DNA from: Histomonas meleagridis 2922-C6/04-290x
Lineage: Eukaryota > Protista > Parabasalia
Length of the DNA stretch: 64,000 bases
Direction: 5' to 3'
NCBI GenBank assembly: GCA_020184695.1
Contig: JAANOX010000235.1
Location: 102,419-166,418 of the forward strand
Below, in pieces: positions 1 through 64,000 of this stretch; the first letter of the stretch is position 1; the number at the start of each line of letters is the position of its first letter. The notes under the pieces were generated by a model, which saw only the letters and a program-made list of their open reading frames with translations, did not search any database and had not been told where the DNA came from. The position numbers were made by a program, and so were the translations under genes.

Positions 1-64
1 TTATTAAATACAAAAATTTAAGTTTTTTTCAAAACTACTTAAGGTATTAAGCATTTATCTTTAC

Positions 65-7268: not shown

Positions 7269-7276
7269 AATAAAAA

Positions 7277-7281
7277 AATGA
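7277..7281 (-). promoter_or_regulatory. Initiator (Inr, TCAYW) of HSP70
   Basis: TCATT on the minus strand, ending 8 nt before the ATG. Matches the known trichomonad Inr. Confidence 0.55.
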
Positions 7282-10551: not shown

Positions 10552-10556
10552 TCACT
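10552..10556 (+). promoter_or_regulatory. Initiator (Inr) of carbamate kinase
   Basis: TCACT ending 6 nt before the ATG at 10563. Confidence 0.65.
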
Positions 10557-10562
10557 TTTACA

Positions 10563-11495: not shown

Positions 11496-11609
11496 GTAAA
11501 AAAGTTACAATAATTTTGTTGTTTTCCCATGAATTTTGAATAAATATTTTAATTTGCAAATGGGAACTAATTTCATCAATAGGTGTCATCCATTTTCGAT
11601 TTTTTATTT

Positions 11610-16784: not shown

Positions 16785-19700
16785 ATGAGCTCGTACAACA
16801 AATTCTGTTCAACTGTTGCAAAATTTCAGATAAAAACGCCGGAAGAAATCATGTCTTTTAGCAGTTGTGCGGATAAAATTACACCAAGAGGCTTCAATCT
16901 TTATCAAGAATATATGATATTAACCAGAATAAAACCTGTGTTTAAAGAGATCTATGACATGATCCCTTTAACTGCAGGTGGTTCTCAACCAATGCTTCTT
17001 ACAAATTATAACAAAATTAGTCAATTGTTGAACATTGTGAAAGGCTTAGTTGCTGAATCTGATAAAGTTTCTCCAAAAGAGCTTCAATGCCAAGGAGTCA
17101 TAGCAGAAATCGAGACAAATATTTCTAAATTTGGAGAATATGTTCCACATCTTACATCTTCAATGGCACCTACATACCAGGCATACATTCCACAACTTCA
17201 AGAATTCCTTCAGAACTCAATGGTTCTTATTGACAAAGCCATAGATTTGACATCCAAAAGTCAAGCTGATTCACTTAAGTCATGTCCCCCAATTAACCTC
17301 GAGCAAATTCCAAATGCACATCTTGAAGTTGCCTTAGCGTCAACGCTTACGTCCTTAATGATAGATCTTATTTTTATTATTTCAGCTGAGCAAATCAAAG
17401 AGTCACAATATGCCACAAACATCAAAGAATGGATTGACCACATTACCAAATCAATTGTTGCTATTTTTGCCAACATTAATCAACCATCACATATTATCAT
17501 AAATAACATACGAGTTTTATCCTGGATCAAACCCTCCATAATCTCAATATTATCACTCATAGAATCCACATGTCCTAATATGGATGATTTTCTTTATGCA
17601 TCAGTCCATGCTATTACACTTCAACAACTTTATTATACATTAGAAACTACAGACACAGTCAATTCCACAATCGAAATTGTACGACAAATTGGTTTATCAT
17701 ATGCTAATAAGCAACAAATGAAGAATTTCATTCCATCATTAAAAGCAATATTAGCAATTGTTGGAACACGTATTGAAGAAGGAAGTTTCATATATAGTGG
17801 GAGTAGTATCAAAGCAACATATTCCACATTAATTGGTGTTATGGAAATCTTTGAGAAAGAGAGTTATGAATCACAAGCGATTATAGCATATACAATATGT
17901 CGTCTTTATGCATTAACAATTGGAAGTTTTAATGGTGGCGACATGATATTATCAAAGATTTCCACTGAAATATCGGAAATATTAAAGAAAATCTTTGAAG
18001 AAGAACTTAATTCGGTTGCATTAATCCAAAAGGCTTATTCAACAAATTTATCTTCATTTGATGAGAAAGTATTAGGACAATTAAGTTATCATGTATCACA
18101 ACTTAATTCCATACAAAAGATTGATCCGTCATCGAATTTCTTTATCGAAACAATTCGTAGAGCTCATGATTCAATCGGATCATTACCAATGGTAATATTA
18201 CGAGTTATAGATAAATGTACAAATAATAAGATCCAAACCATATTTCAGAATGAACATAGTAACTTATTAACAAATGCAGAATGTTTCACTAAATGGACAT
18301 CCGAATTATTATTAACATTATCTACAAATGTACAATTAAGAGTAGAAGCAGCAAGTAATACATTATCATATTTACAAACACTTAAAATCGATTTACCAAA
18401 TGGAATTCCGACAATATTATCAAATATTAATGGTTTAATGCAATCTACACCACAATATATCTTAATGGGCTTTTCTGATGTTAATAAGTTATTAGAGAAC
18501 TTAAATATTATTCGACAAAATTCTACAGCAATTTTAACTAAGTTATCAGAATATGAACAAACAAAAATATATACATTATTATCATTATTAGTTAAAGCAT
18601 TTAAGATATATACAAGTGATTTTATCTCATGTGCAAATCAATTAACAAATTATATAATGTTTCAAGAAGTAGAAGATTTAGTTTCATCATTAACATCATT
18701 ATCTACACAAATAGTACCAATGATTACTGAAGCAAGTATTAAATTTAAACAATCACAAGAATCATTTTATTATTTCTTTTCTAAACCTTATTCTGGTATT
18801 AATACGATATGTTCAATTATACAAAAATATCCAAACTTAGCAGGTACATTAATTAATTTCCCGACAACAGCTAAAACTATTTTAGAAGTAGTTTGGCCTA
18901 TAGCTGCAGAAGTAGCACAAAAAATACCTACTGCAGATACTAATAACTTATTAATGTATACTAATACATTACCTAAGAAATTAACTGACTTATCAACAAC
19001 ATTATTAACTATGCCTCAACCACAAGAAAATGTTAATATTCCTGAAGAACTTCGAGAACTTACTAAGTTAGAACAAAGTTCACAAAAGTTATCACCACAA
19101 TTAAAATATTATGCGCAAATATTATTAGGTTGGGTTAAAGATGGAAAGACACAAAATGCTTTACCATTAGTTAAACAATGGTTTAAAGCAGTAATTAATC
19201 CTTCAAATGATTATAATGATGCATGTCAAAAGTTCCTTTTATCATTATGGAAATTATTATCGAAATCTTCAGATACTAATCAATTTTTAGATTCATTTTG
19301 TTATTTCTCAGTATCTATGGGTAAACATGAAAATGCATTTGGTGAACAATATACAGAATTTGTAAAGAAAAGACATACGTCAATATATAACTCAGTACAT
19401 ACATTATTAAATGGTGAAAAACATTTAACACGATTTGGATTAAAAGTTATATCAGATCTTGTACAAATAATGTCAATTAGTACATATTCATCAATTAAAT
19501 CAGAAGATATTCAAACGACATTAAAATCGGAATATATTAATGTAATATTAGCAATTAAAAAATATTCGGAAAATCATAAAAGTATTAAAGTTACAATAGC
19601 AGTAGTACAAAGTATTAATCAATTATTAACATTATTTTATATTGCAGAATTAAATAATCAATCAGAAAAATCATCAATTAATAATGATACATTTAAACCT

Positions 19701-26260: not shown

Positions 26261-27064
26261 TGGCCGTTATTTCAAATTCAATTCTTATAAGTGGCTTTGC
26301 CCGTATCGTTCATGTATTTCTAAATGTAACCGTTTGTCGTAAAAAGAGAATTGTGTTCCTCAGTAAACATTGATCAAGGAGTATATTATCACAAACATTA
26401 ACACCTGCCACTAGCATACCAAAGAAGTGATGCATTAATTTTTGTTTCTCTCTTAAATGTATTTTAAATGACTTATATTTGGAAATCAATTACTGTTCTT
26501 TGAAACCACAACTTTCATTTTTTGAAGAAACGAAAACTAATTTAAGATATGATTTTGACTTTGAAGTGAAAATGTTGTTTTAAACCTATATCATCTCAAA
26601 AAGCAAAAAAATAGGGATGTTTAAAAACATTCTTCTAAAAATCAAAAATATTTATCGTTAATGGACGAAGTTTTTCAACATGTGAAAAAAGTTGGTTCTT
26701 CGTTGTTCCTAGGAAGTAAGTGACTTCCCATGGTGAAGGAAGTTTGAACGGTTGACATAAAAAAATTGAAATCTTTTCAATGGAAAAAAGTTGAGTGAAG
26801 GAAATTTCAATGTTGTGTAAAAATCATCAACTAAACAGTTATATATTGATTCAAGGAATTAAAACTATTTCTGAGTATGATTTATATCTTCAAATTTTAT
26901 GTGAAACTAGGAAATCCGTTACATCTCTTCCCAAAATCAATGATTCACTTAGATGTGATTTTCATCATCTTAATCAAAATTCTTCAAATTTAATGTCTTT
27001 TTTGTACAAAAAAAATTTGTCAAATATTTTATTTATTGCTATAGTTTTTCTTATCTTATATTTA

Positions 27065-28730
27065 ATGTCAAAAACTTATTTATTAATAATTTATCGAATT
27101 ATTCCAAAAGAGAAAATCAAATTTAAAATTTTACCATTTTTATTCATTTTCTTTTTTGAACAAATATTTTCAGCATATGATGGTAATACTAAAACACTTA
27201 CAATAATTAATTTAAATGATTATAATACGAGATCTACATATAAACAGGATACAAAATATCTCATAATTCAAGGAGGAATTAATATAATAAATTCCAACTC
27301 ATTTTTAGAATGGCCTTCTTTAATTTCAGTTGATATAGGGAATACGATTATATCGATTGAATCTAATGCTTTTGATAAATGTCAAAATCTTGAAACAGTA
27401 TTTATTGGTGAATCTGTCGAAACGATTGGAAGTCAAGCATTTTCTAATTGTATTAAATTAATCAATATTACTATTGGAAATAATGTAATAACGATTGGAA
27501 GTAATGGATTTTCATCATGTTCTTCATTAATAAATATCACGATTCCAAATTCTGTTACATCGATTCAAAGTTATACATTTTCTTCATGTATTAAATTAGA
27601 AAATATTATTATTGGAGAAAATATAAATTTTATTGGTGAATATGCATTTTTTTCATGTATTTCATTAAAAAATATTACAATTCCTAAATCAGTTTATACT
27701 ATTGAACAAAATGCATTTGCTAATTGTACTAAACTTTATTTTATTAATGTATCTCAAGATAATTCATATTATTCTGAACGAGATGGAATTCTTTATGATA
27801 AAAATTATACAGAAATTGTTTATTATCCATTAGGAAGATCAAATGATACAATAAAAATCTCAGATTCACTTATGAAAATTGGAAATACAGCATTTAAACA
27901 ATGGACAACATTAAAGATAGTATATATAGGTGAAAATATAACAACAATTGGAGCATATTCTTTTGAAGAATGTATTAATTTAGAAATTGTTATCTTTGGA
28001 GATAAAGTAAATTCTATTGGAGCTTCAGCATTTTCTAAATGTTCATCATTAATAAACATAACAATTCCTGACTCAGTTGCAACGATTGAATCCTATGCGT
28101 TTCAGTACTGTTCTTCATTAAGAACAGTTATTATTGGTCAAAATGTAAGTTTAATTGGAGATTCAGCATTTTCTTATTGTTCCTCATTAACAAATATAAC
28201 AATTCCTGATTCAGTAGCAACGATTGAATCTGGTGCATTTCAGTATTGTTCTTCATTAAGAACAGTTATCATTGGTCAAAATGTGAATTCTATTGAAAAA
28301 GAAGCATTTGCACAATGCAGCAATCTCACATGTATTTACTTTTTAGGTTATATAACTCCAAATGTAGAAGATGATGCTTTTGATAATATTGAAAATAAAA
28401 CTGTTATGGCATCCGACTTATATCAAAATGAAACATTTGGAGAACTTAACATATCCAAAGGAACGCCAATTGATGAATGTGATCAATATCCGTGGTCAAC
28501 ACACACATTTACTAAATCAAATACATATACAAATACATTTACAAATCCCTTTTCGAAATCAAATACATACACCAAATCAAATACATTCACTAAATCAAAT
28601 CCATTCACTAAGCAAAACTACTGAAATCCTTTCTGAGTCTTCATCAGACAATGAAAAGCAAACCATACATATTGATGATGAATTTAATAATGTAATTCGA
28701 CATGATGAAGATCAATGGTTAATACATTAA
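27065..28730 (+). CDS. BspA-like leucine-rich-repeat surface protein 1 (frameshift near 28615)
   Basis: 23-aa TpLRR units (ITIPDSVATIESYAFQYCSSL), FTKSNT repeats, then the tail ..DEDQWLIH in a shifted frame. Start uncertain. Confidence 0.85.
28505..28611 (+). repeat. Thr/Ser-rich FTKSNT-type stalk repeat
   Basis: Imperfect TTCACTAAATCAAATACA 18-nt units. Confidence 0.8.
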
Positions 28731-34988: not shown

Positions 34989-37190
34989 ATGAGCGCTTTG
35001 TTAACGTACAAGAAAATGGAAGTGGATTTAAGTTGGGTTGATTCTCATAAACCAATTGTTTTGATGAATGGATTAAGGTCTTTTGAAAAATTAGTTTTGA
35101 CGAGAAGGATTAACGAGGAAGATATACAAAATATTTATCCACATCTTGTTACACTTTTTTGTTCACCAAGTATTTACATTAGAAGCTTAGCGTTAAAACT
35201 TTTTCATCAAATTTTAATAACAGATTTAGACAGTATTTCATTAACACCTTCACCATTTCCAAATTTATTTAAATGTTTGATTTCACCAAAACAAGAAATT
35301 TATAGCAATGCCATTTTATGTATTGATTTATTATTTAATGCAGAAAGTTCAGATATTTGGTATCCTCTGTGCGAAAAAATTTTATTCAATTCAAAATCCT
35401 ACAGACAAAAAGTCCATATTATGGAATTATTATCAAAACATAAAGGTGTTATTCCACTTCGTACATTGGTTAAACTTCTTGATGACCCAATATTTCAAAT
35501 TCAAAAAATAGCTGAAGAGATGATCAATGAATATGATACATCAAAAATCCAAGAAGAGCTAAACAAATCAAAGAACATCCAAAACAACAAACAAAATGAA
35601 GCCAAAAAGAAGACCAATCCACTGAAAAATCCACGCTTGTATAATTTTTCACCAACAAAACGGTCTCAAGAAACGAAAGAAAACAATAAAAAACAAAATA
35701 AAATTAATGTTAATAAAAAGCAAAATTCCAAAAGAATCAAAGAACAAAGCATTAAATCGACATCTTTTAATGATGAACATAGTTTTTATGTAAATAACGA
35801 GAAATTCTCAAATATTTCTGATAGTGAAAATGAAACAATGAACATAACATATAATAGCATAATAAAAGAGGAAAAATCAAATTGTTCACAAAACCCTATA
35901 AAATATAAAGAAAATGAGTCTCAAACATCACATAGTAAAAAGAATATTCAACAATCACCAACAATGCGAAACAAATTTTCAAGAATGATAAAACAGCCTT
36001 TAGCAATTACACTTAAAGATATGAAAACTCTTGATTTCCAAACCCGAAAGTTAAAATTAAAACAGATATACTATGCTTTAGTAAACAATCCAAACCTTAA
36101 ATATTCACCTGATCAATTACTTGATTGTGTACTTACAGCATCACAACCAAATAAAATTATATCGAAACTTATAATTAAAATTATTTCTATAATCATTGTT
36201 GAATATCCTGAAATAATTCCTATTTTTCTTGATGAAATTACTGCTTTTCTTATCCAAACTAAACAATTATTTCAAGCTAATGATGAAGTTTGTGATGAAT
36301 TAATTGAAGCATTATTAGTAGAAATTTCAGCAGAAGATTTACTTACATCAATTCTAAATAAAATTGGATCTAATACGCATAACATCGAAAAAATAATTTT
36401 TAAGATTTATCAAATAAATCCAAACATTAAACTTAATAGAAATGATTTATATCATTTATTGAGTTTTCTTTTTTATGGTGTTTATTCTTCAAATCAAAAC
36501 AATGAAAATATAATTGTTATAGTTTTTAAGCTGTTTCAAATAATATCTGAAAATCAACAAAAACTTTTTGCTGATTATGTTTATCAAATGCCTTTTGATA
36601 AACGAAAAATATTAATGAGTTACATTCAACCAAACATTGATAAACAACAAACTAAAGATATTCTAATTGGTTATGATAAAAACGAAGATCCTTTCGAAGT
36701 GATATTAAAAGAACTTAAAACTAATAACGAATGTAATTTTTATAAATTAGTAAACGCATTTAAATATGCAAAATTTCAATCAGAAGAACATAAATTTAAT
36801 GTTTTTAAGAAACTTATTCTGTTTCTTTCTCATTTATCAGATGAAACAATTAATGAAAACATCGAATTTATTGAAAAAATTTGTTTACATTTTGATTCGC
36901 CAATGTTTTTATCTATATTGGAAACAAATAAAATAACTCCACCTTTGATCACTGGTTTAACTATTTTCTTATGGAATTGTAATGAATGTGTGTTTAATGG
37001 TGCTGAAAAGTATTACCCAGTTTTATATAACTTGTTTTGTAAAATGGATGGGAAAAGAAGATCAGATATAATGTTAATTTGGTATTTGATTCAAAATGAA
37101 ACACATATAAGTTATGATGAATTTGATAAGATTCCAAAGCCTCATCAAAAACTGATGCTTCGTCTTCTTGATCAGTTTGATAATCAATAA
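34989..37190 (+). CDS. Hypothetical protein with N-terminal HEAT/TOG-like helical repeats
   Basis: 733-aa ORF; helical N-terminus, basic low-complexity middle. Confidence 0.55.
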   Translation: MSALLTYKKMEVDLSWVDSHKPIVLMNGLRSFEKLVLTRRINEEDIQNIYPHLVTLFCSPSIYIRSLALKLFHQILITDLDSISLTPSPFPNLFKCLISPKQEIYSNAILCIDLLFNAESSDIWYPLCEKILFNSKSYRQKVHIMELLSKHKGVIPLRTLVKLLDDPIFQIQKIAEEMINEYDTSKIQEELNKSKNIQNNKQNEAKKKTNPLKNPRLYNFSPTKRSQETKENNKKQNKINVNKKQNSKRIKEQSIKSTSFNDEHSFYVNNEKFSNISDSENETMNITYNSIIKEEKSNCSQNPIKYKENESQTSHSKKNIQQSPTMRNKFSRMIKQPLAITLKDMKTLDFQTRKLKLKQIYYALVNNPNLKYSPDQLLDCVLTASQPNKIISKLIIKIISIIIVEYPEIIPIFLDEITAFLIQTKQLFQANDEVCDELIEALLVEISAEDLLTSILNKIGSNTHNIEKIIFKIYQINPNIKLNRNDLYHLLSFLFYGVYSSNQNNENIIVIVFKLFQIISENQQKLFADYVYQMPFDKRKILMSYIQPNIDKQQTKDILIGYDKNEDPFEVILKELKTNNECNFYKLVNAFKYAKFQSEEHKFNVFKKLILFLSHLSDETINENIEFIEKICLHFDSPMFLSILETNKITPPLITGLTIFLWNCNECVFNGAEKYYPVLYNLFCKMDGKRRSDIMLIWYLIQNETHISYDEFDKIPKPHQKLMLRLLDQFDNQ

Positions 37191-37706: not shown

Positions 37707-40700
37707 TCAGTTCGCCAAATCAGATATCACATCTCTTTCCTGTCTTTCATTACTTCTAATTGTTTGGAAGTCGAAACAAATCATTGGCTTCAGTTCGCCC
37801 ATCTGATCAGTCCTCATCATTATGTTGACTCCTTTACTTTTCAGGTCGTTTAAAATTTTTTCTTTTGCTTCTTTTTGTGATTTGCATTGTACAAAGTATG
37901 TATGCGAATAAACGCATTTAGTGTTTTCACCAACCCATGACGTATAACATTGTTCGACATTATTTGCATTATCTTCATTTTCATTTTCATCGACAAATAA
38001 TTTTTCGATATTTGACCGCCATTTATTTCGTTCGAAACTTGTAGAACTTCCTTTAGGTACTAAGAACTTCAATAACAAGTTACCAAATGGCGCATATAAC
38101 ATTACTGCATCAAGTCCATGTTCCTTATTGAAATCCCATATAATATTTGAAGTTTTACATGAAAACTTCATCTTAAACTTGTCAATAGTCTTTTGTATTC
38201 CCATTATAATGTTATTTTTGAATAAGAATATTTCGATTTTCCCTTTGTTCAAAAAGCTTTCCATACTTCTCCCGAAAAACTCGAAGTGCTCGACATATAG
38301 TCCTCCTTCTTCATGCATTAAAGTTTTTATTCCCCAATTTTCTGATTCGGAAACAATCGATGGAGCGAATTTGTTATTCGAGTTCTTTTTAGGTTTTGAG
38401 AAATTTTTCAATTCAAATTGACCGTGCGTCAGTAAAACGTCATCGACGTAAAATGGCATAGTTTCGCCGTGTATCGTCGTAACGAATTTAATTGTTTGAA
38501 GTTCTTTTTGAGACTCGACGATTAATTTCCTCTCATTAATAATCCTAACAATGTATGCGAATTTTGCGTGAGCCTTACGTAAGTTTGGTAAGTCCAAATG
38601 CTTATCAGGTGTTGCATTAATGATAGCCTTAATTAATTCAGGATAATAAGTAAATTGTTGAGTCGGTACAATTAATGCGTCATCAACAGTTAGTTTAGAA
38701 TAACCACTTGGCAAATTTAACAATTCGCTTAATACTGGTGAATTTCTAATGATTAAAATCGTTTTATCATAAATAGCGGCTATTTGTAAAAATGGCAAAA
38801 ATGCATCTGCGAAATATAACAAAAATGATCCTATTTCTGTAGAAGGCTTTAAGTTGGAACAAATGTCCTTAAATCTTCTTGCAAACAACCTTAACAAACG
38901 ATGCATTTGTTTCACTTGTTCCATATATAACCGTATTGTTGGGTTTGTACCGAATTTTTCGGAGAAATTACAAATGCAATTTAATATTGGAACAGCATTT
39001 AATTGCGTGCTAAGTAATTCGTTGATAGCACTTGCTCTTTTTTCAGGAGATTTAACATAATCGAGAATTTCATCATTCCCATTTTGTCTTGCGTACGTTG
39101 ATATTACTGGGTCCACAATAAAGTTTGCACCATTTTCGACCAAAACTTTAACAATTTCTTTGTTTTGGCTATTGATTGCATGATGTATAGCAGATAATCC
39201 ATCCGGACTAACTAATGAAGGGTCTCCTCCCATATCGATAATTATTTGTATGATTTTTACCGCTTCGTTTTTGTTTTCATATTTTTGATTTATCGCATAT
39301 ATTAATAAGCAAATTCCTTCTTTGTTATATACATTTGCGGAATATCCTTTTGAGAAATGATCATTTAAACTATTTAATGTTATCGGACTATTAAATATTG
39401 GAAGTTGTTCATATTCCGATATCACCAACGAACAACGTGTGTTTTTTAATTTCGATGAGAATTGTAATGGCGTATCATTATCAATATCCTTTTGACTTAA
39501 AAGTTCTTTAATTTGATCGAACTCTAATAATGGCTTATGATTATTTTTTGTACTAATTAACTCTGTAAGTGCTTTAACATTTTTATTATCTGAACATATA
39601 TGTAATATGTTTTGTTTCTTACTATTAGTAACATAAATATGCGCTTTGTTCTTAATTAGTAATTCGAAATTAGTTCGGAAGTCATCAGATTCATGTTTTA
39701 ATAATTGGATTAACGCTGTTTCCCCTTCATGATTAATACAATTAATCGGAATCTTTGATGTTTCGATTGATGATTGAAGTCCTAATGTAGAATTTAATAA
39801 CGCAGAATAATGTAATATAGTATTACCCATTTGATCAATCGCTTTTGATAATTGTGGACATGCTTTTAAGATGATATTTCGTGACTTATCACTTTTATGT
39901 GTGGTCGTTCGAAAGATTAATGGTTTCCCATGATCTAAAATTGAAGGATTCATTCCATAATCTTCGATAAGTATTCTTAAGACTTCTTCTTCCTCTTTAA
40001 TGACTGATGAGATTAAACATTTTTCTGCATTGGGTTCAAAGTCTGTGATTTTTTGCGTTTTCATCTTGTTTAAGATCGTCATCGCTAATTCGGTTTTGTT
40101 CTCTTCAATCGCATTTTGTAATAACGTTTTATGATCTTTGGCTAATACTTTTAATGGATATGTGCCTTTCGATAATAAGTGTTCCATCATTAATGATGCT
40201 AAATGACTATCATATGTGATGAGCTTCTTACTAATAATTGATACTTCATAAAATTGCTTCGGATTTAAACTCATCACTGATTTGACCATTTCGACATTTT
40301 TGGATGCAACAGCACATGCAATGATTGTACGACCTTTAGCATCAAGTGTCTCAAAGTTCGGTATCCCAACACAAAACATTTGGAAAAAGGCATTAACGTC
40401 GCCTTTAAGTGCTGCAAAGTGATAAGCGGTGGTTTTTCCAGTGAAAAAGTTCGGATTCGCTCCTTTTTCGATGAGCGCAGAAATAAACTGGATATGCTTG
40501 TAAGAGATGGCATAAAGTAATGGAGTCATTTGGTGGATATCTACAACATCAATAACTTTCTTGTTGTATGATTTAAGAAATAATATATTCCCTTCAATCG
40601 CTGCTTTATGAATATCACACAATGTAAAGGATTTGCCAGTGGTCCCCCATTGAGTTGAACGCGCAACGACATCGGAAATTAAACTGTTTTGAGATCGTTT

Positions 40701-41495
40701 ATTGATAACGGCACCATGTCCATAAAGATATTCAACAATCTCTGGAGAGGTGGCCATCTCTATTGGCGTCTTCTCCATTTTTGGATTCTTTGATTTAAGA
40801 TTAATATCAACTTTGAAATTATTATTTGACGGAATTAAAACTTTAAGCATTGGAAGATTGTTGGCTTGAACTATATAATGAATAAGACCAAAACCATCGT
40901 CGTCATATGAGTTAACATAACTAATATCCATAGCTAACATGATAACTTTGAATGAATTTAATGAATCATTATTAAGACATAATTTACCAATTTCAACAAA
41001 ATTGGTGGAAATGTAACGAATGGATGAGTATGGTACAAGAAGTTCTTTGAGTCCAAAAAAATAATTTGTTTGTATGGCAAGTTTGATTGGATTGATTTTT
41101 TTTTCGTTCTCAACAATAGCAGAAGCTCCATTGGCTATTAAATTCCTAATTGCTTGAATGTTCTTTGTTTTTGTTGATATAAATAAAGGAGTTTGTAAAT
41201 GTGAATCAACTGCATTTAAATAAATAAATCCGCTAAGAAGAATTCTCCAGTTGGTAAAGTTTGGTGACGCTGCTAAAATATGAAGTAGATTTTGCTTTTG
41301 ATCATCAACTAAAAAATCTAAACCATATACAGTTGTAAATGAACTCTCAATTTGTTGTTGGAGATGCCTTCTATCTGAGTTCATGCATATATCAATGAGT
41401 GTCGAAATGTTTGCTTCCGCAAAAGAAAAACTCATTCTTCTCCTTGAATTGTCACAAGAAAAGTTTGTGTGAAAAACCGATTTTCCCCCGTTCAA
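37707..41495 (-). CDS. Ankyrin-repeat RhoGEF (DH, probable PH-like) protein
   Basis: Many uninterrupted ankyrin repeats (TPLLYAI, TAYHFAA, SAIHHAI), then DH motifs ELLSTQ..LIVPTQQFTYYPELIKAIINATP..LRKA. Confidence 0.85.
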   Translation of the reverse strand: MNGGKSVFHTNFSCDNSRRRMSFSFAEANISTLIDICMNSDRRHLQQQIESSFTTVYGLDFLVDDQKQNLLHILAASPNFTNWRILLSGFIYLNAVDSHLQTPLFISTKTKNIQAIRNLIANGASAIVENEKKINPIKLAIQTNYFFGLKELLVPYSSIRYISTNFVEIGKLCLNNDSLNSFKVIMLAMDISYVNSYDDDGFGLIHYIVQANNLPMLKVLIPSNNNFKVDINLKSKNPKMEKTPIEMATSPEIVEYLYGHGAVINKRSQNSLISDVVARSTQWGTTGKSFTLCDIHKAAIEGNILFLKSYNKKVIDVVDIHQMTPLLYAISYKHIQFISALIEKGANPNFFTGKTTAYHFAALKGDVNAFFQMFCVGIPNFETLDAKGRTIIACAVASKNVEMVKSVMSLNPKQFYEVSIISKKLITYDSHLASLMMEHLLSKGTYPLKVLAKDHKTLLQNAIEENKTELAMTILNKMKTQKITDFEPNAEKCLISSVIKEEEEVLRILIEDYGMNPSILDHGKPLIFRTTTHKSDKSRNIILKACPQLSKAIDQMGNTILHYSALLNSTLGLQSSIETSKIPINCINHEGETALIQLLKHESDDFRTNFELLIKNKAHIYVTNSKKQNILHICSDNKNVKALTELISTKNNHKPLLEFDQIKELLSQKDIDNDTPLQFSSKLKNTRCSLVISEYEQLPIFNSPITLNSLNDHFSKGYSANVYNKEGICLLIYAINQKYENKNEAVKIIQIIIDMGGDPSLVSPDGLSAIHHAINSQNKEIVKVLVENGANFIVDPVISTYARQNGNDEILDYVKSPEKRASAINELLSTQLNAVPILNCICNFSEKFGTNPTIRLYMEQVKQMHRLLRLFARRFKDICSNLKPSTEIGSFLLYFADAFLPFLQIAAIYDKTILIIRNSPVLSELLNLPSGYSKLTVDDALIVPTQQFTYYPELIKAIINATPDKHLDLPNLRKAHAKFAYIVRIINERKLIVESQKELQTIKFVTTIHGETMPFYVDDVLLTHGQFELKNFSKPKKNSNNKFAPSIVSESENWGIKTLMHEEGGLYVEHFEFFGRSMESFLNKGKIEIFLFKNNIIMGIQKTIDKFKMKFSCKTSNIIWDFNKEHGLDAVMLYAPFGNLLLKFLVPKGSSTSFERNKWRSNIEKLFVDENENEDNANNVEQCYTSWVGENTKCVYSHTYFVQCKSQKEAKEKILNDLKSKGVNIMMRTDQMGELKPMICFDFQTIRSNERQERDVISDLAN

Positions 41496-53070: not shown

Positions 53071-54276
53071 ATGAGCTCTGCCTCTGCTGCTGTCCAAGCC
53101 ATATTAGATTCTCTTGGTATCAGCATTTCAAAGGCAACTCTTATAACTTCTATTACTGATGATGCTGAACGTTACATTCAAAATTTTCTTTCTTCAGTTT
53201 TACTAATTTCTTCAAATTCAAGATCTCAATGCATAACCTCACAACATATCAATCGAACACTAAAGGCAACACGTCAGCCATGTTTATTTGGATATTCAGA
53301 ATCAAACATTCCAATTGTTAGTGTTTTTTTTGATCAGTCTGAATTAATTGTACCAAAAGAAAATACTGTATTAACAAAAAAATTAACTGAGATGGAGAGA
53401 GAGCCATTACCAACACAAAATTCATATCAATTTGATTATTTACTTACAGAAGGAGTACCAACCCACAAAAAACTTCTTTCTAACCGCCGAATCCTAGTCA
53501 AAATTCCGAAACTTATTGAACGCTCTGCGTCGGTTACTCCTTTACAACCAAGCTCAGCGCCTTCAAACATAGATCTCACAAGAAAGCACTCGGTTTCTAT
53601 CACTGATAGGGTTTACGACCATAACCAAAGTGCTGGCGATGTTATTACTGGTGAATTACAACTTTTTTATGTGAGAATTATTAACTTAATGCACGAAGAT
53701 CTACTTAACTCAAAAGAATCAGCATTGAACTGCTTAGTAAATGAAAGTGGATTCCAACAATTACTTCCATATTTCCTTCAATTTATATATGGACAAATGA
53801 TTCTCAATTATCAAGATGTTCAATTAATGACAATTCTAATTCAGATGACAAGAGCATTGGCAGCCAACAAGTATCTGACTTCGGATCATTATGTTCATTG
53901 TTTTCTTAAAATTGCTTTTTCTGGATTACTCGGATTTGGCTTCACTACAAAAGAATATAAAGAAGACTTTTTACTACGCGAAAATGCTGCTGAACTTATA
54001 TCAATTTTAAGTGACAAATATGAAAGATCATATCCGTCGATAAAATTGTCAATATTCAACTCACTGATCAAAGCGTTATTTGATCCGGCGACAACACTAA
54101 ACGCTCACTATGGTGCTCTTTGCGGGATAGAAGCACTTGGGGTTAAGGCAATTGAACATATTAAACCTCATTTGAAGTCTTATGAAAAGTTTATTGTTTT
54201 TGCAAATAAAAACAAAACCATTAAAGCAACAGAAATGATTGTGAACAAAATTAAGTCAATGTTGAATGACAGGTAA
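53071..54276 (+). CDS. TAF6: TFIID subunit TAF6
   Basis: N-terminal histone fold plus LLPYFLQFI, LRENAAELI and HYGALCGIEALG HEAT motifs. Confidence 0.8.
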   Translation: MSSASAAVQAILDSLGISISKATLITSITDDAERYIQNFLSSVLLISSNSRSQCITSQHINRTLKATRQPCLFGYSESNIPIVSVFFDQSELIVPKENTVLTKKLTEMEREPLPTQNSYQFDYLLTEGVPTHKKLLSNRRILVKIPKLIERSASVTPLQPSSAPSNIDLTRKHSVSITDRVYDHNQSAGDVITGELQLFYVRIINLMHEDLLNSKESALNCLVNESGFQQLLPYFLQFIYGQMILNYQDVQLMTILIQMTRALAANKYLTSDHYVHCFLKIAFSGLLGFGFTTKEYKEDFLLRENAAELISILSDKYERSYPSIKLSIFNSLIKALFDPATTLNAHYGALCGIEALGVKAIEHIKPHLKSYEKFIVFANKNKTIKATEMIVNKIKSMLNDR

Positions 54277-54562
54277 TGTTTGTTTTTGTTTCTTGAATAA
54301 ATTGTTATTTTAAAATGTTTTGGATTTTTTATACTGAAATTTTTTACTTATTATTATTGATTGTTAAAATAGAAAAAAAAAAAATTAATAATATCTTTAT
54401 TATATATAATATTTGTGAAAAATTCATATTAATGTACATAATTTATGAAGTTTTGAATTTTAAAAATAAAAAAACCTTTAATATCAAATAGTAAAATGAA
54501 ATACAAACAATAATTTTTCGGTATTTATAAATTTGTTCTAAACTTTGAAAAGGCTTCAGACT

Positions 54563-54636
54563 TCCTCCCTAACTCAGTTGGTTAGAGTGTCAGACTGTTA
54601 ATCTGGAAGTCGTGTGTTCGAGCCACACGGGAGGAG
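54563..54636 (+). tRNA. tRNA-Asn (anticodon GTT), intronless
   Basis: Acceptor TCCTCCC/GGGAGGA, D stem ACTC/GAGT, anticodon stem TCAGA/TCTGG with loop CT-GTT-AA, T stem GTGTG/CACAC with TTCGAGC loop, discriminator G. Confidence 0.95.
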
Positions 54637-54637
54637 A

Positions 54638-54644
54638 TTTTTTT
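54638..54644 (+). terminator. Pol III oligo(T) terminator of tRNA-Asn
   Basis: T7 one base after the discriminator; a further T6 at 54648-54653. Confidence 0.7.
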
Positions 54645-55506
54645 ATGTTTTTTGCACCTGATGGTTTTTTGCATCAGGAAACCAGATATTCAGAATCTAC
54701 TGTCTATGAGGAACAAGATGATGCCATTTCCGATCGAAATGAAAAAATTGATAATTATTATATCGAAAATTTGGACACGAAAAACGACCCAAATCGCCAC
54801 GACGGCTCATCCCCGCCTCTAGAAGACTTAGAAGAATGTCCCAATATCGAAATCGGCCACAACGAAGAAGAATTATATGATCAATGTTAATCCAGATCTC
54901 CCTTTCCAAAACGAGATACTCTTAATTCGGGGAGCTCATTACAATCCTAACTCAGAACCACAAAATGAATTCACACCAACACCACCATCAGAATGGATCA
55001 TAATCACAGCAGACTCAACCATCTCAAATTTCCTACCGTCAAGATGTAATCACAACCGAGGAATTATTCTATCATGAGGACTAGCAAGAATTAATCAAGT
55101 AAACCTCGAAATTAACTCGAATTTACCTCCCATCTTCCCAACGATAGAAGAAATTCAGAAAGGTGTGCTTGATTTACGTTATTTTGTAGGACCAAACATA
55201 CCTCAGTCAAAACCAAAACCGATCCAATTATTTTTTAACGACCAACGTATTCAATCCATTGTCAATATTGCAAAAGCCACTATCCAAAATTATGTCATTA
55301 CTTATAAGATCAACATGAATAATACTCGAAATACCTGGAACTTATTCCAATTTGTTACGAACGATAACTCGATCAAGAATAGTCAAATCAATAACATCCA
55401 AAAAACTCAAATTAACACTAATAATTCACTACAACAAACACTATACATGGAACAAAATAACTTGAACTTAACGAATGAGAGAACAAATCAACAATCCAAT
55501 GAGATA

Positions 55507-56100
55507 CAACATAACATAGTAAATCATAAAGTCAATGTGAAAGAACAGACAATTAACACTGAAGCAAAGGTAGTCAATCATACTGTCGATATTAAAGAAC
55601 ATTTAATTAATACTGAAGCAAATGTTGTTAATCACAATGTTAATATTAATGAACATATCATTCAAACTGATGCAAATGTTGTACATCACGACGTTAAAGT
55701 TAACCAACATCTAATTAAATCTGAAGCCAATGTCGTTAATCATAATGTTGAAGTTAATCATCATTTAGTCAAATCCAAAGCTGAAGTTACTAATCATGAT
55801 GTTGAACTTGAAAATCATACAATTAAATCCACAGCTAAAGTTGTTAATCATGATGTTGAAGTAAATCATCATTTAGTCAAATCCAATGCTGAAATTGTTA
55901 ATCATGATGTTGAAGTTAATCACCATTTAATGAAATCCACAGCTGAAGTTACTAATCATGATGTTGAAGTCGAAAACCACACTATTAAATCCAAAGCTGA
56001 AGTTGTTAGTCATAATGTTGTAGTAAATAAAGAAAGAATCGATACCGAAGCAAACGTTCAAGAACTTAGAATCAGGATACACAAAGATGTTCAAACATAT
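55507..56100 (+). repeat. Eleven 54-nt (18-aa) coding repeats in copy 1
   Basis: Consensus xAxVVNHDVEVNHHLIKS with exact 54-nt period (e.g. EAK at 55561, EAN at 56047). Confidence 0.92.
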
Positions 56101-58110
56101 GATGTTAAAATTCCTGAAGTTAAAATAAACTATAAAAAGCGTCCCTAAACAATTAACTATTTCTGAAGCTCTTGCTAGAAAATTTAATACTAAAACAACA
56201 TCAAGTTCGGAAACAAATGATACATATACTTCAGATGATGAATCAGATTCATCTGATTCGTCGGATGAATCAAATACAAACAATAACGATAATTCGGACT
56301 CAGATCCTTTTGACGATGAAGAAACAAATGAGATAAATTATGATGAACTAATTGAAGATGTTAAAAAGATCGAAACGAAACAAGATGTAATAGATCTTAT
56401 AAATAAATGGAAAAACACAGCTAATGCACCAGGTTGGAAACACGAAGGAACTCACATTTCACAACATCCATTGTTACATATTATGTTACGAGAAAATAAG
56501 TGGTGTTACCCAGGTCTTTATCCTTGTCAATGTAAATGCAATAAAGTTCTCCCTTCAGGGAGTGCACTTAGAGCTCATATGGATAAAGAACATGTATGTA
56601 TAACAGATAAGAATCATATATATGGTTGTATTAAAAAATTGTTACAGATCAAAGACATATATTGGGAAATTCATGAAAATGAAAATAATACGAAATATTA
56701 TACAAATAATATTATTGTTTGTCCTTGCCCGGGATGTAAATATTTCACCGACGCCTATAAATCTCTTCTGTCTCACACACGGCATCCCATAAGGAATTCG
56801 ATAATAATAAAGAAGAATTAGGATGGTATTGGACAATGATAATAACATATGCGAAAACTAGAAACATCTTACCTAATGCTTTAAACATATTACAAGATAA
56901 AAAAGGATTCATTTGTAAAATATGTAATATACATTGGGGTTCAAATAATATTGGTATAGTTAATCATATTAAAAAAAGCAACATCCAAATTTTGATTATG
57001 AAGGTGGAGACATTAGATATAGAAGAATTAATTGTAAATCAATCATAAAATTTGGATATCAATAAAGATGTACAAGAAAGAATTGATGAAGACATAAATA
57101 AAATGAATGAACAAGTTGATAGATATAGGATAGCAACAGAAAGAGAAAGATCAAATGTTAAAGAAGAACCATTAATTATAAATGTTAGACAACGATTAAA
57201 TGCTAATAGAAGAAGAATCAGGGAAAACAACTTAAGAGTTAATAGATTAAGAGATCAACAACTTAACCAACAAAATACTAATGAGACAATTAACACAAAC
57301 ATAAATAGTCCACAAACTTCTGAACATGAGGATAATTATAATAGTTCAGAATATAGTTATTCTGAAGAAGAATCATCAAGTGACAATAAAGAAGAAACTA
57401 ATAATACGAATTTAAATATAAATTACCTTAAAAATCTTACAAGAGAACAATTATTAGAAGTAGCAAATAAATGGACTGAAGAATGTAATGAACAAGAACT
57501 TCAAATGATCTCATTACCAAAAATTCGGGGAAAGAATAAAACAAAGATCATCAGAGAAATCCCCAAACTATTCAAATATATAATAAAACATTTAATTAAA
57601 ATATGTGAACCATTAAAATGATAGACCAGAAGACGAAAAACTTTGATATTTGGGAAGGTTGTTTATCTAAAATCAATCTATTAAATAGAGAAGAAATTTG
57701 TAATACTTTAAAAATTACTGGAAATAAAATGTTACATAAAACACAAGGGATAGTTAGAAGTAACAGAAATAGAGAAATTAATATGGAAATGGAAACAGAA
57801 ATCAAAAATATTTATAAATTTAGCACTATCATTAGAAGAATTCATCACTTCTATCATAAACAGCAAACACAAATGATATTTAATATGATTAATAGGTTAA
57901 AAGATAAACTCATCAAACTTCTACCAAACATCAAAGATGAATTTAGAAATTGCATTGAAATAAATTTACCCAATGACATTGATAATCTAATGAATATGAC
58001 AACAGATTATTTAGAAGGTAAAACTACAATATATAGAAGCAAGAATTAATACGTTACAAACGAATCTAGGAGCTAGAAGAAAAGAGAATTACAAAGATTT
58101 AATACAAAAC

Positions 58111-59424
58111 ATGTATAGAGAAGATCCTAGAAGATGTCTTAGATGGTATGTTATTCCCAATACTACACCAGAATGTAAACTAGAACCAGATAAATTTGTT
58201 GAAACATATGGAAGAACATGGAGCCAAGAAAAACTAATAGAAAACAATGAAGAACTTATGTTAGATAAAATTATTGAGGCGGAAGATAATAATAGTTTAA
58301 TAACGGATTTATATGATGATGAATTAATTGAAGGGGCTATTATGTCGAGATCGAATATCTCGGCATATGGCCCTGACGAGATTTCAAATCTAATTTGGAA
58401 ACTTGGAAAGAAATATACAAGAGAAATGATCAAAAACACAATGTGGGTTACTATGAAATCGAAAAAATGTCCACAACTTTTAAAAAGAGGAAAAACAGTC
58501 ATGATATATAAAAAAGGTGATATTAATGATCCCCATTTTTGGAGACCAATTACTATCACTTCAACGTTCTACAGAATTTGGATGGTCGTTATATCAAGAG
58601 CGTTCCAAAACCTAAATAACAGACATAGATTCATATATAAGTCTCAAAAAGGTTTTATGCAATATCTAAATGCTACATCGGAACATTCGGTTATGTTAAA
58701 TGAGTTGATTCAACATGTTTCAAGAAATGAAGGATCAATTTATATAACAACTATCGATTTTGCAGATGCATTTGGATCAATATCACACGCTCAAATATTC
58801 AAATCAATGAAAGAAAAAGGCTTCATCAATCACATCGTTAATTTAGTCAAAGCATCTTATAAAGACACGACGACAAAGATTCAAATCCCATCGAAAGGTT
58901 CTTCAGATACGATTCATTTCAATTGTGGAGTTAAACATAGATGTCCCCTTTCACCAATCATTTTTAACATTTGTATAGACGCTTTATTAAATAAATTAGA
59001 ACAACAAACTATTGATGGATTCCATATTAAAGATAAAATCATCTGTGCACAAGCATATGCAGATGATTTAGTTCTAATCTCAGATACTAAAAGGGGAATA
59101 AACAATTTAATCAACACAGTGGAAAGATTCTGCAAATATGCGAAAATGGAAATACAACCACAAAAATGTAGAACCTTCTCTTATATTAATCATAACAATA
59201 ATCGTTCTTCAGCTGCTACAGAGTTTAAAATTGGTGATAAACTTATCCATATAATTAATATTAGAGGAGGTACTCCATATCTTGGAATAATGACTGCTTT
59301 AATGAAAAATACGAGAACAAAATCAGCAGCTTCGGAAATTAACAAAGCAATATCAGATGTAGGTAGCATTGGCTTAATCTATCTTGTTTTGTTAAATTAT
59401 GGTATTCTGCAGATAACGAACTAA
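58111..59424 (+). pseudogene. Reverse transcriptase domain of copy 1
   Basis: Non-LTR RT motifs including YADD; the canonical GVxQG motif has decayed to GVKHR. Confidence 0.9.
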
Positions 59425-59930
59425 GAGAAATTTTTCGTTATTAATGTTGAAACGAAAAATGTTTTAGATATAAAGTTAATATGGAGAATCCTCAAGAAGC
59501 TAATGATTTATTTTTTGGTATAAATAATCCTAATTACAGAAGAAATTTATACGGAACGTCAAACATTTTTAGCCGTGTAATTTCTATATTATGTAAAAGG
59601 AATATTTATTTGAAACTGAACAATACCGAAGAAGAACCAATTAGTATAGCATTAAATGATATTATAACAAATACTGATGAAAATAATTTCCTGGAAATAA
59701 TGAATAATTATTTTAATGAGTAACACTACAATAAATTAATATCTTCTGGATTAAGAGGTCATACATTCAAGACACTAAAAGATAGCAAAATATCCAATCA
59801 CTTTATTCCTTAATATTCTTGCTTATTAAATGATGAGATCATCAAATTTGCGGTAGAAGCAAGAACCAATAGCTTCTACACAGGACAATATGCAAGATTA
59901 AATAGTAATGACCTAGAAAATATTGGAAAT

Positions 59931-60437
59931 TGTAGATATTGTCAAAGACCAGACTCATTATAACATCGATTAAACGATTGCAAACATTTATTGAACAAAT
60001 TTAAACCTAGACATGATGCAATAGTCCGTGAATTAGTAGGAATGCTAATATCAAGAAGTAACAGATTAATCCATCTTGATAGTGTACTTCTAATTAATGG
60101 TAACAGAATAACCGGTGAAAACGATACTAAAAGACCTGATATTTGGTATGAAACAGATGATTCATATTATCTTATCGAAGTTACTGTCCCCTATGGTGAT
60201 GTAAGTGAAGAAAATGAATTGTCGTTAGAGGTAAGGTACAACGAGAAGAAAGAAAAATATGCGGAGCTTTTAGTAGATATCAAGAATCAATTTGGCAAAG
60301 ATGCCAAACTCTTTGTCATAGTGATTTCTTCACTTGGTGCATGGTACTCGGAATCTCTTAAAGATTTAAGGATCATAGCAGAAACAAAGGAAAACTTTAA
60401 GAGATTTGCTAAAAGAATGGTAATCGCTACACTATAG
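59931..60437 (+). pseudogene. CCHC knuckle and restriction-like endonuclease of copy 1
   Basis: CRYC-x7-H-x4-C (internal TAA), RHDAIV, KRPDIW, LIEVTVPYG, KKEKY. Confidence 0.88.
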
Positions 60438-60794
60438 TACTCTAGAAAGATCCTAATGAATATCTATAGTGAAGAGAACAGAAGGAACAATAGTTCTGAA
60501 GAAGACAGGTCGGCGTCATCAACTTCATCAACGTCATCATCGGAGGAATACAAGGAACATGAAGAGACAGAAGAGTACCTCGTCAACCCTAATGAACAAG
60601 CTGAAATAAAAGATATTCAAGATTTACCCGTGGAGTCAACAACGGATACAGAAGATGCAACAACGGGACAAGAGATGTTGTGTTCTACATCATCATCCTC
60701 TGGGGGTGAAGATGGTGATGAGAACAATGATAACATATTAACCCAAACCCCAACCTTTTAAATCACTTACTTTTAGTATGCTTGAGTAATAGAC

Positions 60795-60809
60795 CCACAC
60801 GGGAGGAGA
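60795..60809 (+). repeat. 15-bp direct repeat of the tRNA-Asn 3' end (probable target-site duplication)
   Basis: CCACACGGGAGGAGA is identical at 54623-54637 and 60795-60809. Confidence 0.9.
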
Positions 60810-63800
60810 ATGAATTTTTTTGAAACTTCTTTTTTGCCCCCGCAAACGCGATATTCGCGTTCTCCTCCAGGAGAGGACTACATCGATGTAAATTTTGACC
60901 GGATTCGTAAAGTTGACCCTCAATCTGATGCACATCAAGTTTTTCAGAACGACCATGGACAGTCACCAGATACAAGAGCAACCCCAATTATCATAGAATC
61001 TACCGAAGAACCACAAGTAACAGTCCCACCACAAGATTATGAGATAGAATTTATTCGAGAAGCACCATTTCCACACAAGATCGTTCTAGCACGAGGTATT
61101 CACTACAATCCACAACCCACAACACCTCAAGGTGAGGAATTACCTATTCCACCAGAATGGGTAATTATCTCATCAGATCCGACTATCATAAATCTTTTAC
61201 CAATAGATTGTGGAGAATCTCGAGGTCTTATTTTATATAGAGGTCAAGTCACAATAGAGTCAGGAATTTTAGTTATACATGAAAATACTCCAAGGATTCC
61301 CCTATCGTCCAGGGAAATTGAACGAGGTCTACTTGATTTAAGATATTTTGTAGGACCAAACAAACCTTGTCAAATGCCCTTGAGATATAATTTAAATGAT
61401 CCAAAAATCAGTTATATCTTTAATATCGCAGTCAATTGTCTTAAACAAAAAATCTATATTAATCAAACATTGATCAATATTAGTAACTTTTGGAGAAATA
61501 CCAACATTCTTACCGATCATTTAATCATCAATAATGGAAATATGAATCATGAAAATACATTAAGTTCTAACCATGAGAGTATTCTTAACCAAAACTCAAC
61601 AAATTCGACTTTAGTTACCGAACCAAATGTTCAAGTACATGAAATTAATTCAATATTCGAAACTGTCACATCTAATTCTACTGTTGTTAATCATTCTGTC
61701 AACCCAATAAACGAAACAGTTACATCTAATCCTATGGTATATTCTCATAATATTGAACCTCAATATTAAACAATCACCTCTAAGCCAATAATTAAGGAAC
61801 TTGAAATTGAACCGGAAAATCAAACAATTACATTTACACCTACTATTACAGGAAATAAAATTGAGCCAAATAATCAAACAATCACATTTACACCTACTAT
61901 TACAGACAATAAAATTGAGCCAAATAATCAAACAATTATCTCATATCCAATTATTAAACAACATGAAGTACAACCTTATTATGAAACTATTGTTTCTAAC
62001 GCTACAATTTTGAATCATAATATAAATGTAAATAAAGAAGAAATTACTTCAGAGGTTTTAATTAAAGAACATAACTTAAACATTAATAAAATTCCAATTG
62101 AGACTACTGCAGATATTCAAGAAAATATTATACATGTAAATAAAGTTAAAAAAGTTATTGATGTTGATGTCCCAGAATTTGAAATCCGTTATAATAAAAT
62201 ACCTAAAGATTTAAATATGTCAAAAATAACATCATTTAATTATTCTAATTTATCTAGTGATGAAGATAGTTTTAATGATGATTCAGATATTAATACTAAT
62301 CAAAATTCAAATGATAATGAACCAAATAACTTAAATAGTAATAATCATAAATCTGATTCAGATAGTGATAATGAAGATAATTCCACTAAAGAATTAGAAT
62401 CAAATTTATAACAAGAATTAAATTAAAGAGATTAAAGGTTGTAAAACTTGTGATGATATTAATAAATTAATTGATTATTAAAAAACTAAACAAAATTTAA
62501 ATATTTGGAAACATGAAAAGTTGAAATTAGCAGAACAACCAATCGTTCATATCATGATAAGAGAAAATAAATGGTGCAGACCAGGACCTTTTCCTTGTCA
62601 ATGTGAATGTGAAGAAACATTTAAAACTGCTAATGTATTATTAAATCATTATAATAAAAAACATAATCATAAACCTGACACTTATCATTTATATGGTTGT
62701 TTTCGAAATTTAATTAATAGAGATTTAATTTGGTTATTAAAGTTCGAAGATAATGACCAAAACTATTATAGAAATAATATAATTTCTTGTCCAATTCCTG
62801 AATGTAAATATTTTACTAATAATTTTAAATCTTTACTTTCTCATATTACTCATAATCATCAAGATTTAGATAAAGAAAGAAATACTATTGGTTGGTTATG
62901 GGCTATCATAATAAAATATGTTAAGAAATATGATGAAATTCCTTCAGTAAGCAATATTTTAACTAAAAGAGAAGGTTTTATTTGTAAGCAATGTAATATT
63001 TGCTGGGGTTCAGATCTCAAAGGTATTTGTAATCATGTTAAAAAACAACATGCTTTATACAGTTTAGAAGGTGCAGAATTACCTTATTCTAAAATTGAAT
63101 GTTATCCTATTTTAAGGACTGAATTTGATGAAGATTTATTAAATAAAATTAATCAAGATATTAAAAATAATGAAGATAAAATTATACTTAATAAAACATT
63201 CAAAAAAAATGAAAGTTTATCCATTAGATAAAATCCAATAGATTTAACTGATAAACAAATATTAACAAGACAACAAAGATTAAGTCGTGAGAATACCATG
63301 AGAAACATTTTGAATCGTAATTTACGATTGGAAAAATTAATTAAACGAAAATGACAAGAATATGAATGAAAATAATAATGAAAATAATGAATATTTTAAT
63401 ATTGATCCTAACAAAATTGTTATTCCTATAGATTCTAATAAGATTGAAGATTTGAATTATAGTTATTTAAATAATTTAGAAAGAGAACAATTATTAAATA
63501 TTGCTAAACAATGGACTAACTTAAATTTATTCCAAGAGAAACAAAATATTTCATTACCTAAAACTTGGGGTAAAAATAGAAGTCTGATTCAATCTGAAAT
63601 CCCTAAATTATTTAAAAATAAAATTGATCCTTTAATTAAATTATGTGAACCTAAAAATGATAGACCAATAGATGAAAACTTTTATATTTGGGAAGGTTGT
63701 CTTTTCAAAATTAATCTCTTAATTAGGGATGAAATTAGAGATATACTTAAAATTCCTTTAAATAAAATGTTACATAGAACAAATACAGTAGTAAAAAGTA

Positions 63801-64000
63801 CTGAAGAAATATAAAGAATTAGGAATTTAGAAAAAGATAATCATAACCTTAATAAATTGACAATTTGGATTAAGAAAATATATTATGAACTTTGTCATAA
63901 GAATAGAACTCAATCTATTCATAATATGATCAATCAAATTTCTTTAAAGATTTTAAATTTAATCCAATTCCTCCAGGATGATATAAAATCTTTATTAAAT
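60810..64000 (+). mobile_element. Second, divergent copy of the retrotransposon family, truncated by the window end
   Basis: Colinear homology to copy 1 (FL..TRYS, RGxHYNP, LDLRYFVGP, 18-aa repeats, HIMxRENKW, three C2H2 fingers, IWEGCL); in-frame stops. Confidence 0.9.
61620..62159 (+). repeat. Ten 54-nt (18-aa) coding repeats in copy 2
   Basis: Same register as copy 1; near-identical pair at 61821-61874 and 61875-61928. Confidence 0.88.

Follow-up and report, generated by a model that had tools for sequence, protein, structure and literature searches.

The 64,000-nucleotide stretch analyzed here (the window) comes from the parabasalid poultry parasite Histomonas meleagridis 2922-C6/04-290x (assembly GCA_020184695.1, contig JAANOX010000235.1, positions 102,419 to 166,418, forward strand) and contains a single tRNA gene, tRNA-Asn(GTT), directly behind which lies E1, a degraded retrotransposon without long terminal repeats (non-LTR) of the restriction-like endonuclease (RLE) type. 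ARAGORN places the tRNA at 54562-54637, and Rfam family RF00005 places it at 54563-54636 with a score of 61.7 bits (gathering score 29) over model positions 1-71 of 71; the two programs agree with a first-pass annotation of this DNA, which had described a complete tRNA-Asn(GTT) followed within 1 nt by an element and whose coordinates are correct. That annotation recorded neither the decay of E1 nor its neighbor, a second related element (E2). The order along the locus reads tRNA-Asn, E1, a 15-nt tRNA fragment, E2 (Table 1).

The tRNA fragment is one of two copies of a short direct repeat. The 15-mer CCACACGGGAGGAGA is found at exactly two sites in the window, in the tRNA gene itself and at the 3' junction of E1; allowing one mismatch adds no further site, and 100 dinucleotide-preserving shuffles of the window yielded 0 matches, in line with the earlier statement that 14 nt from the tRNA's end, together with one base, recur exactly at the element's 3' end. 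Mapped onto the Rfam alignment, 14 of its positions are tRNA nt 60-73: the final T-loop base, CACAC of the 3' T-stem strand, GGGAGGA of the 3' acceptor strand, and the discriminator G. The fifteenth is one extra base.

Table 1. Features of the tRNA-Asn locus, in window coordinates
Feature	Position	Strand	Evidence
tRNA-Asn(GTT), intact, insertion target	54563..54636	+	Rfam, ARAGORN
Left copy of the 15-bp repeat, still within the functional tRNA gene	54623..54637	+	sequence match, Rfam
E1, degraded single-ORF RLE-type non-LTR retrotransposon, 6157 bp, same orientation as the tRNA	54638..60794	+	
Run of seven T directly 3' of the tRNA; element ORF ATG then at 54645	54638..54644	+	sequence read
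54-nt tandem repeats encoding an Asn/His/Val-rich 18-residue unit; variable N-terminal part of the ORF	55517..56030	+	TRF, translation
Three C2H2-type zinc fingers, presumed DNA-binding module	56345..57048	+	weak Pfam, conserved patterns
Reverse transcriptase domain, YADD motif	58021..59370	+	RVT_1 E=1.8e-27; 60.7% identity to P0178
CCHC zinc knuckle between reverse transcriptase and nuclease, stop codon inside	59931..59981	+	clade-conserved; aligns with R2 linker
Restriction-like PD-(D/E)xK endonuclease domain; RHD, PD, E-x-T and K-x-x-K-Y all present	59991..60437	+	
Acidic Ser-rich C-terminal tail; stop codon 60759-60761; 33-nt 3' untranslated end	60456..60794	+	
Right copy of the 15-bp repeat, orphan tRNA 3' fragment; 3' junction of E1 and 5' junction of E2	60795..60809	+	
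E2, 5' 3.2 kb of a second related element, tandem, degraded; runs to the end of the window, which is the contig end	60810..64000	+	

The element had been announced as an RLE-type non-LTR retrotransposon of about 6.16 kb, and its 6157 bp do carry an RVT_1 reverse transcriptase (RT) and a PD-(D/E)xK nuclease. There is no long open reading frame (ORF) in E1; many plus-strand ORF pieces together run collinear with P0178, the intact 2101-aa protein of a metagenomic relative (locus L016), from the ATG at 54645 to position 60497, with 33-60% amino acid identity. Relative to P0178, E1 has accumulated at least six frame changes, eight in-frame stops, and an 81-residue gap. Judged from this damage, E1 is a dead copy of an RLE-type non-LTR retrotransposon. 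The RVT_1 match lies in an open 437-aa ORF (58111-59424), and the alignment displays the catalytic motif AYADD. The nuclease is matched by the Pfam family L_protein_N, of the PD-(D/E)xK fold, with E=4.6e-05 in E1 and with 31.4 bits, above the cutoff, in intact P0178; the region aligns to the R2 RLE, with the PD, E, and K residues conserved. The solved structures closest to E1 are R2 proteins (9nl3, 9dou, 8gh6), with both RT and RLE aligned, the R2 structures considered being R2Bm 8gh6/8ibw, R2Tg 9dou, and 9nl2/9nl3. The order of zinc fingers, RT, CCHC motif, and RLE, together with these best structural matches, identifies E1 as an RLE-type non-LTR retrotransposon.

Pfam scans of E1 and its relatives gave no apurinic/apyrimidinic endonuclease (APE) domain, those of E1, L010, and P0178 gave no Ulp1-like peptidase domain (a feature that within the NeSL clade is confined to nematode NeSL and one Utopia), and E1 has no LTRs or other terminal repeats beyond the 15-bp target repeat. 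An Rfam scan of window positions 54000-64000 revealed no self-cleaving ribozyme at the 5' ends; beyond the tRNA it returned just sub-threshold miRNA and U6atac matches, which we take as chance. One of these, a plant MIR9563 match on the minus strand at 59163-59281, scores 42 bits (gathering score 90) and falls within RT coding sequence. The N-terminal third of the proteins of the wider clade described below (~560 residues) is poorly conserved and contains no recognizable domain.

E2 starts with an ATG directly after the second 15-mer, and its 319-aa ORF encodes a product resembling the N-terminus of E1. The two elements are collinear, with 65-82% nucleotide identity in patches, and E2, too, is broken by frame changes and stops. 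It also contains the 54-nt tandem repeats for the Asn/His/Val-rich 18-residue unit (61804-61938). In an exact-sequence look-up, its N-terminal ORF falls in a cluster with a protein assigned to H. meleagridis, and the window's host genes are present on contigs of two assemblies of this species (GCA_020186115.1 and GCA_020184695.1). The syntenic locus in the other H. meleagridis assembly (L007) is 99.3% identical and has the same arrangement of E1 and E2. A second Histomonas locus, L005, holds a longer array. It opens with E2' (5-5843), 95-98% identical to E2 and followed by an exact 15-mer; then come the internally deleted E3 (5859-8517) with a 15-mer carrying two mismatches (8518-8532), a further element, E5 (8533-11507), with an exact 15-mer (11508-11522), and finally a 330-nt 5' fragment of another element, E4, which closes the array. 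Elements within the Histomonas arrays differ by 25-35% in DNA, represent different subfamilies, and have different 5' leaders. Because of this divergence and subfamily difference, the array members, as far as their sequences tell, are separate insertions and not recent tandem duplicates.

We searched sequence collections with several parts of the proteins. Scanning JGI metagenomes with an RLE alignment recovered three loci, and the same alignment found no matches in bacterial and archaeal genomes or in viral contigs. Queried with the RT-to-RLE part of an intact relative, HMMER returned ~100 strong representatives (E<1e-65; clusters at 50% identity), often single proteins of 1700-2600 aa, and every representative looked up came from a metagenome assembly. 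In word-indexed protein searches, the E1 RT ORF gave eight matches, none of them named, the E2 N-terminal ORF gave nothing beyond the query itself, and the RT-to-RLE part of P0178 gave solely unnamed metagenomic proteins. Each intact relative has one ORF, 2003-2588 aa long, and RVT_1 is present in all of them. The element at L016, which encodes P0178, is flanked on both sides by the identical Histomonas 15-mer and stands in tandem with different neighbors, and L015 has the near-identical repeat TCCGCACGGGAGGAGC on both sides.

Elements of the same kind stand behind other tRNAs. In L012 and L013, an intact 2003-aa ORF lies directly behind tRNA-Ile(GAT), complete in L012 and cut by the contig end in L013, and the last 14 nt of this tRNA are repeated at the 3' junction, after which another element begins. 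The tRNA of L012 (18-90) has the anticodon GAT, which for tRNA-Ile is the usual bacterial form and is uncommon in eukaryotic nuclear genomes. In L014, a 2038-aa ORF follows directly on a complete tRNA-Arg(ACG), whose last 14 nt recur once, at 7245-7258, before a T-run and unrelated host flank; from its junctions, L014 is a solitary insertion with a clean 14-bp target-site duplication. Four further loci (L008, L009, L010, and L011) have junctions in the format of tRNA 3' ends, with the source tRNAs absent from those contigs. L011 alone deviates in position: its repeat also spans the T-loop (TTCGACT) and so begins near nt 53-54, not at nt 60. The L011 contig joins bacterial-type genes at 1-2865 (DUF4956, Cthe_2159, PGA_cap) to a short 3' element piece and a full element, and is probably a chimeric scaffold. 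Neither a tRNA nor the 15-mer is present on the contigs of L001-L004; the L001 contig breaks off in ...GTAAACACAC, a suggestive but not conclusive end. At L002 (5390-7459), a distant RT match (28% identity) lies beside a DUF5641 gene; this combination suggests an unrelated LTR/Pao-type retroelement rather than a family member.

Across this sample a tRNA 3' fragment follows every recoverable 3' junction, both in Histomonas (six junctions, two loci) and in the nine metagenomic loci. A check set beforehand, for copies at unrelated sites, accordingly found none among the recovered 3' junctions. Both elements with a complete upstream tRNA, in L012 (Ile) and L014 (Arg), start right behind it in the same orientation, as does that in L013 behind its partial tRNA. 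Behind tRNA-Asn, tRNA-Ile, and tRNA-Arg alike, the repeat begins at the last T-loop base (nt 60), and the base preceding the repeat differs between the tRNA and the element 3' end. Since the repeat changes its sequence with the tRNA, it is part of the target rather than of the element. The possibility that the 15-mer is an internal part of the element was likewise checked and not borne out: the Ile-type repeat is found behind tRNA-Ile and the Arg-type behind tRNA-Arg, and in L014 the repeat precedes host flank. The junctions indicate that the cut position is conserved across different tRNAs.

We built a maximum-likelihood tree of the RT-to-RLE region with 64 rows, in which broken copies were read through with X at the breaks. 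All tRNA-linked elements fall into one clade (48 rows; support of 100 in the Shimodaira-Hasegawa-like approximate likelihood-ratio test, SH-aLRT), distinct from the remaining RLE-type proteins, one of which is a Filamoeba protein that has zinc fingers plus a Myb domain. Within it, support of 100 also unites the Histomonas elements with L016 and L001, and the Arg and Ile elements sit on other branches; this distribution of the Asn, Arg, and Ile elements implies that the target tRNA has been switched within the clade. The sole hint toward the NeSL clade (NeSL-1, R5, Utopia, NeSL-1_TV) is one of score, not of phylogeny: the Caenorhabditis protein P0105 reaches 248 bits against the tRNA-linked clade, more than the ~174 bits of the solved R2 proteins. 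In terms of classification, E1 and its intact relatives by their sequence have the traits of RLE-bearing non-LTR elements: an RT with YxDD, a CCHC motif followed by a C-terminal PD-(D/E)xK nuclease, and, in the intact relatives, a single ORF with N-terminal zinc fingers. They depart from the R2 clade in that the target is a tRNA gene and not 28S rDNA and that no Myb domain was found. Assignment to the NeSL clade is plausible. The E1/E2 family belongs to the tRNA-gene-specific RLE retrotransposons, a class that is already known.

The element ends have features in common as well. Every related element contains a run of 4-10 T that starts within its first 7 nt, with at least five T in all but L015, and in several elements the ORF itself starts ATG-TTT-TTT or similar. 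We infer that the T-run serves as a polymerase III terminator for the tRNA and keeps the gene functional. Nearly all 3' ends (L005, L008-L012, L014-L016) stop in ...(G/A)TAAA(A) right before the tRNA fragment; that of E1 differs (60762-60794) and reads ...GTAATAGAC. The A-rich 3' end may be a poly(A) signal or a feature recognized by the RT and, if it is a poly(A) signal, the RNA may end inside or just past the tRNA fragment. We also considered a tRNA-like 3' end, which is unsupported: folding of the last 110 nt plus the tRNA fragment of six elements gave no significant or shared structure (z-scores -1.8 to +1.1).

Based on these structures and their recurrence, it is highly probable that H. 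meleagridis harbors a family of RLE retrotransposons that inserts site-specifically behind the 3' end of tRNA-Asn(GTT), always in the same orientation as the gene, probably through R2-type target-primed reverse transcription (TPRT). In the mechanism that we propose, the three N-terminal zinc fingers would position the protein on the tRNA gene, and the C-terminal RLE would introduce a bottom-strand nick facing tRNA nt 59/60, where the T-loop (B-box region) has its edge. Primed by the 3'-OH released there, the element RNA would be reverse-transcribed starting at its 3' end, and the top strand would be nicked at the discriminator or a few bases past it. Repair of the resulting 14-15-nt stagger would duplicate tRNA nt 60-73(+1), such that the left repeat completes the tRNA and the right repeat remains behind the element as an orphan fragment; complete H. 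meleagridis 3' ends would then all precede CCACACGGGAGGAG. A nick at the edge of the B-box, which is common to tRNA genes, may explain the fixed geometry across tRNAs. With the T-run at the element's 5' end supplying a terminator, the gene would stay usable and could be hit again. Arrays would arise because the gene is rebuilt and targetable again, with repeated hits giving head-to-tail series of divergent elements separated by the same 15-mer; the entry point of new copies may be the intact gene or an orphan fragment.

A different source for the repeated tRNA sequence is conceivable, in that the fragment at the 3' ends could be copied from read-through element RNA, its 14-nt tail annealing as a guide, with the arrays formed in one go by template jumping as the RT passes from one RNA's 5' end to the 3' end of another. 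R1/R2-type elements use read-through tails as guides in priming, and the R2 RT is capable of template jumping. The ...(G/A)TAAA(A) that ends nearly all elements resembles a poly(A) signal and stands just before the tRNA fragment, as this account would have it, and arrays are very common, with near-identical neighbors in several metagenomic contigs. Adjacent elements in the window and in L005, however, share 65-75% identity and belong to different subfamilies, a pattern better matched by separate events; plain duplication accounts fully for the solitary L014 insertion, and the folding of element ends that include the fragment (z -1.8 to +1.1) uncovered no conserved RNA structure. We regard copying from read-through RNA as rather unlikely; it is compatible with the staggered-nick account.

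A single insertion at a tRNA with subsequent growth of the array by unequal crossing-over or gene conversion would yield the head-to-tail order and the identical spacers, and the truncated fragments that end two arrays do suggest rearrangement. It would leave the differences in subfamily and 5' leader among array members of 65-75% identity unaccounted for, and the same position behind three tRNA species in separate lineages requires independent targeted insertions; on the strength of the divergent members and three tRNA targets, we rejected growth by recombination alone, to which we assign very little probability. Still further from the data is a chance repeat or integration by a recombinase. 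A short direct repeat that regenerates a tRNA 3' end is the hallmark of integrase-mediated islands, such as those at bacterial tRNA 3' ends; here the host is eukaryotic, the Pfam scans show RT and RLE and no integrase or transposase, and the chance expectation for the repeat is 0.00 matches. With that expectation and no recombinase domain, both were rejected as having next to no likelihood.

Several observations weigh against the proposed targeted insertion by TPRT. All Histomonas copies seen are defective, and they come from a sample of two loci, so that copies may also lie elsewhere in the genome. The arrays at L005 (11523-11850, ~330 nt) and L009 (3185-3385, ~214 nt) end in the 5' fragment of a 3'-truncated element followed by unrelated DNA, unlike the outcome of simple TPRT, which predicts 5'-truncated copies. 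The zf-C2H2 Pfam matches in E1 (56471-57048) are weak and below the cutoff, although of 27 full-length clade proteins at least 70% keep the three C-C-H-H patterns, and Pfam found no Myb-type domain (E<=0.5 in P0178, E<=0.1 in E1). Lastly, the duplication length of 14-15 bp is a minimum, its right-hand limit requiring an empty tRNA-Asn site; of the first-pass proposal of a tRNA-Asn-specific family making a 15-bp duplication, the targeting and the preservation of the tRNA hold, and the length stands only as this minimum.

The remainder of the window is occupied by mostly intronless genes, which fits a trichomonad, among them a BspA-type leucine-rich repeat gene (26795-28624), an ankyrin-RhoGEF gene (37707-41495), and TAF6. 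Three ORFs have no Pfam match at 1e-5: 16737-21860 (+; 1707 aa), 34989-37190 (+; 733 aa), and 7965-9845 (-; 626 aa).

Among described elements the nearest relative is probably NeSL-1_TV of Trichomonas vaginalis, an RLE-type non-LTR element reported as specific for tRNA-Pro (Kojima and Jurka 2015, PMC4640811). At the level of these published descriptions, NeSL-1_TV and the Histomonas family are both parabasalid RLE elements with a tRNA target, and they differ in that target, tRNA-Pro versus tRNA-Asn. The planarian LIN15_SM and LIN25_SM, RLE-type elements related to NeSL/R5, target tRNA-Arg and tRNA-Glu (PMC4640811). LIN15_SM inserts inside the tRNA body, its 3' flank beginning in the anticodon arm, and splits the gene (PMC4640811, supplementary junctions), whereas the Histomonas family keeps its tRNA whole. 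R2 provides the closest parallel in protein architecture (a single ORF with N-terminal zinc fingers, RT, CCHC linker, and C-terminal PD-(D/E)xK nuclease) and in its site specificity for a multicopy RNA gene; however, R2 interrupts and inactivates the 28S copy that it enters, whereas the Histomonas element lands behind the last tRNA base, and the clade proteins, at 1700-2600 aa, are about twice as long as those of R2, with no Myb domain and no 5' ribozyme detected.

Other mobile elements, among them Dictyostelium TRE5/TRE3 and yeast Ty1/Ty3, also land safely at tRNA genes and leave those genes intact. These enter at any tRNA gene, at variable distances upstream or downstream, through contact with polymerase III factors and with an APE or integrase. 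The Histomonas-type junction, in contrast, is base-precise, and each lineage uses one tRNA, with an RLE as the enzyme. Dada DNA transposons strictly target tRNA and snRNA genes as harmless multicopy sites (PMC3706591, PMC8869645); they use a transposase and no reverse transcription, whereas the Histomonas family encodes RT and RLE. Our literature search found no description of Histomonas retrotransposons, of tRNA-Asn targeting, or of such arrays, and the present family is the first H. meleagridis retrotransposon family of which we found any record.

R2-like RLE elements are the model for TPRT and are in development for gene insertion at safe sites, and most known members destroy the gene copy that they enter. 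The Histomonas family, by comparison, lands one base behind the tRNA gene, rebuilds 14 bases, and brings what would be its own terminator, so that the host would lose nothing. The first-pass annotation had seen here a harmless safe-harbor strategy of engineering interest; the tRNA is indeed kept intact, but the copy in the window is dead, and the interest lies with its intact relatives. Whether these relatives form a large, for the most part undescribed, and probably parabasalid clade of ~100 clusters that always cuts at the same point, has repeatedly switched its tRNA (three or more further acceptor sequences besides Asn, Ile, and Arg), and each time rebuilds the gene and supplies a terminator is, in our judgment, evenly balanced. 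One cut position on at least three tRNAs, together with intact and comparable proteins, makes target switching by RLE elements testable. If the wider proposal is true, the clade would offer a set of natural insertion enzymes that act with base precision, spare the gene, and have been retargeted in series, of which the intact members at L012, L014, and L016 would be usable for biochemistry.

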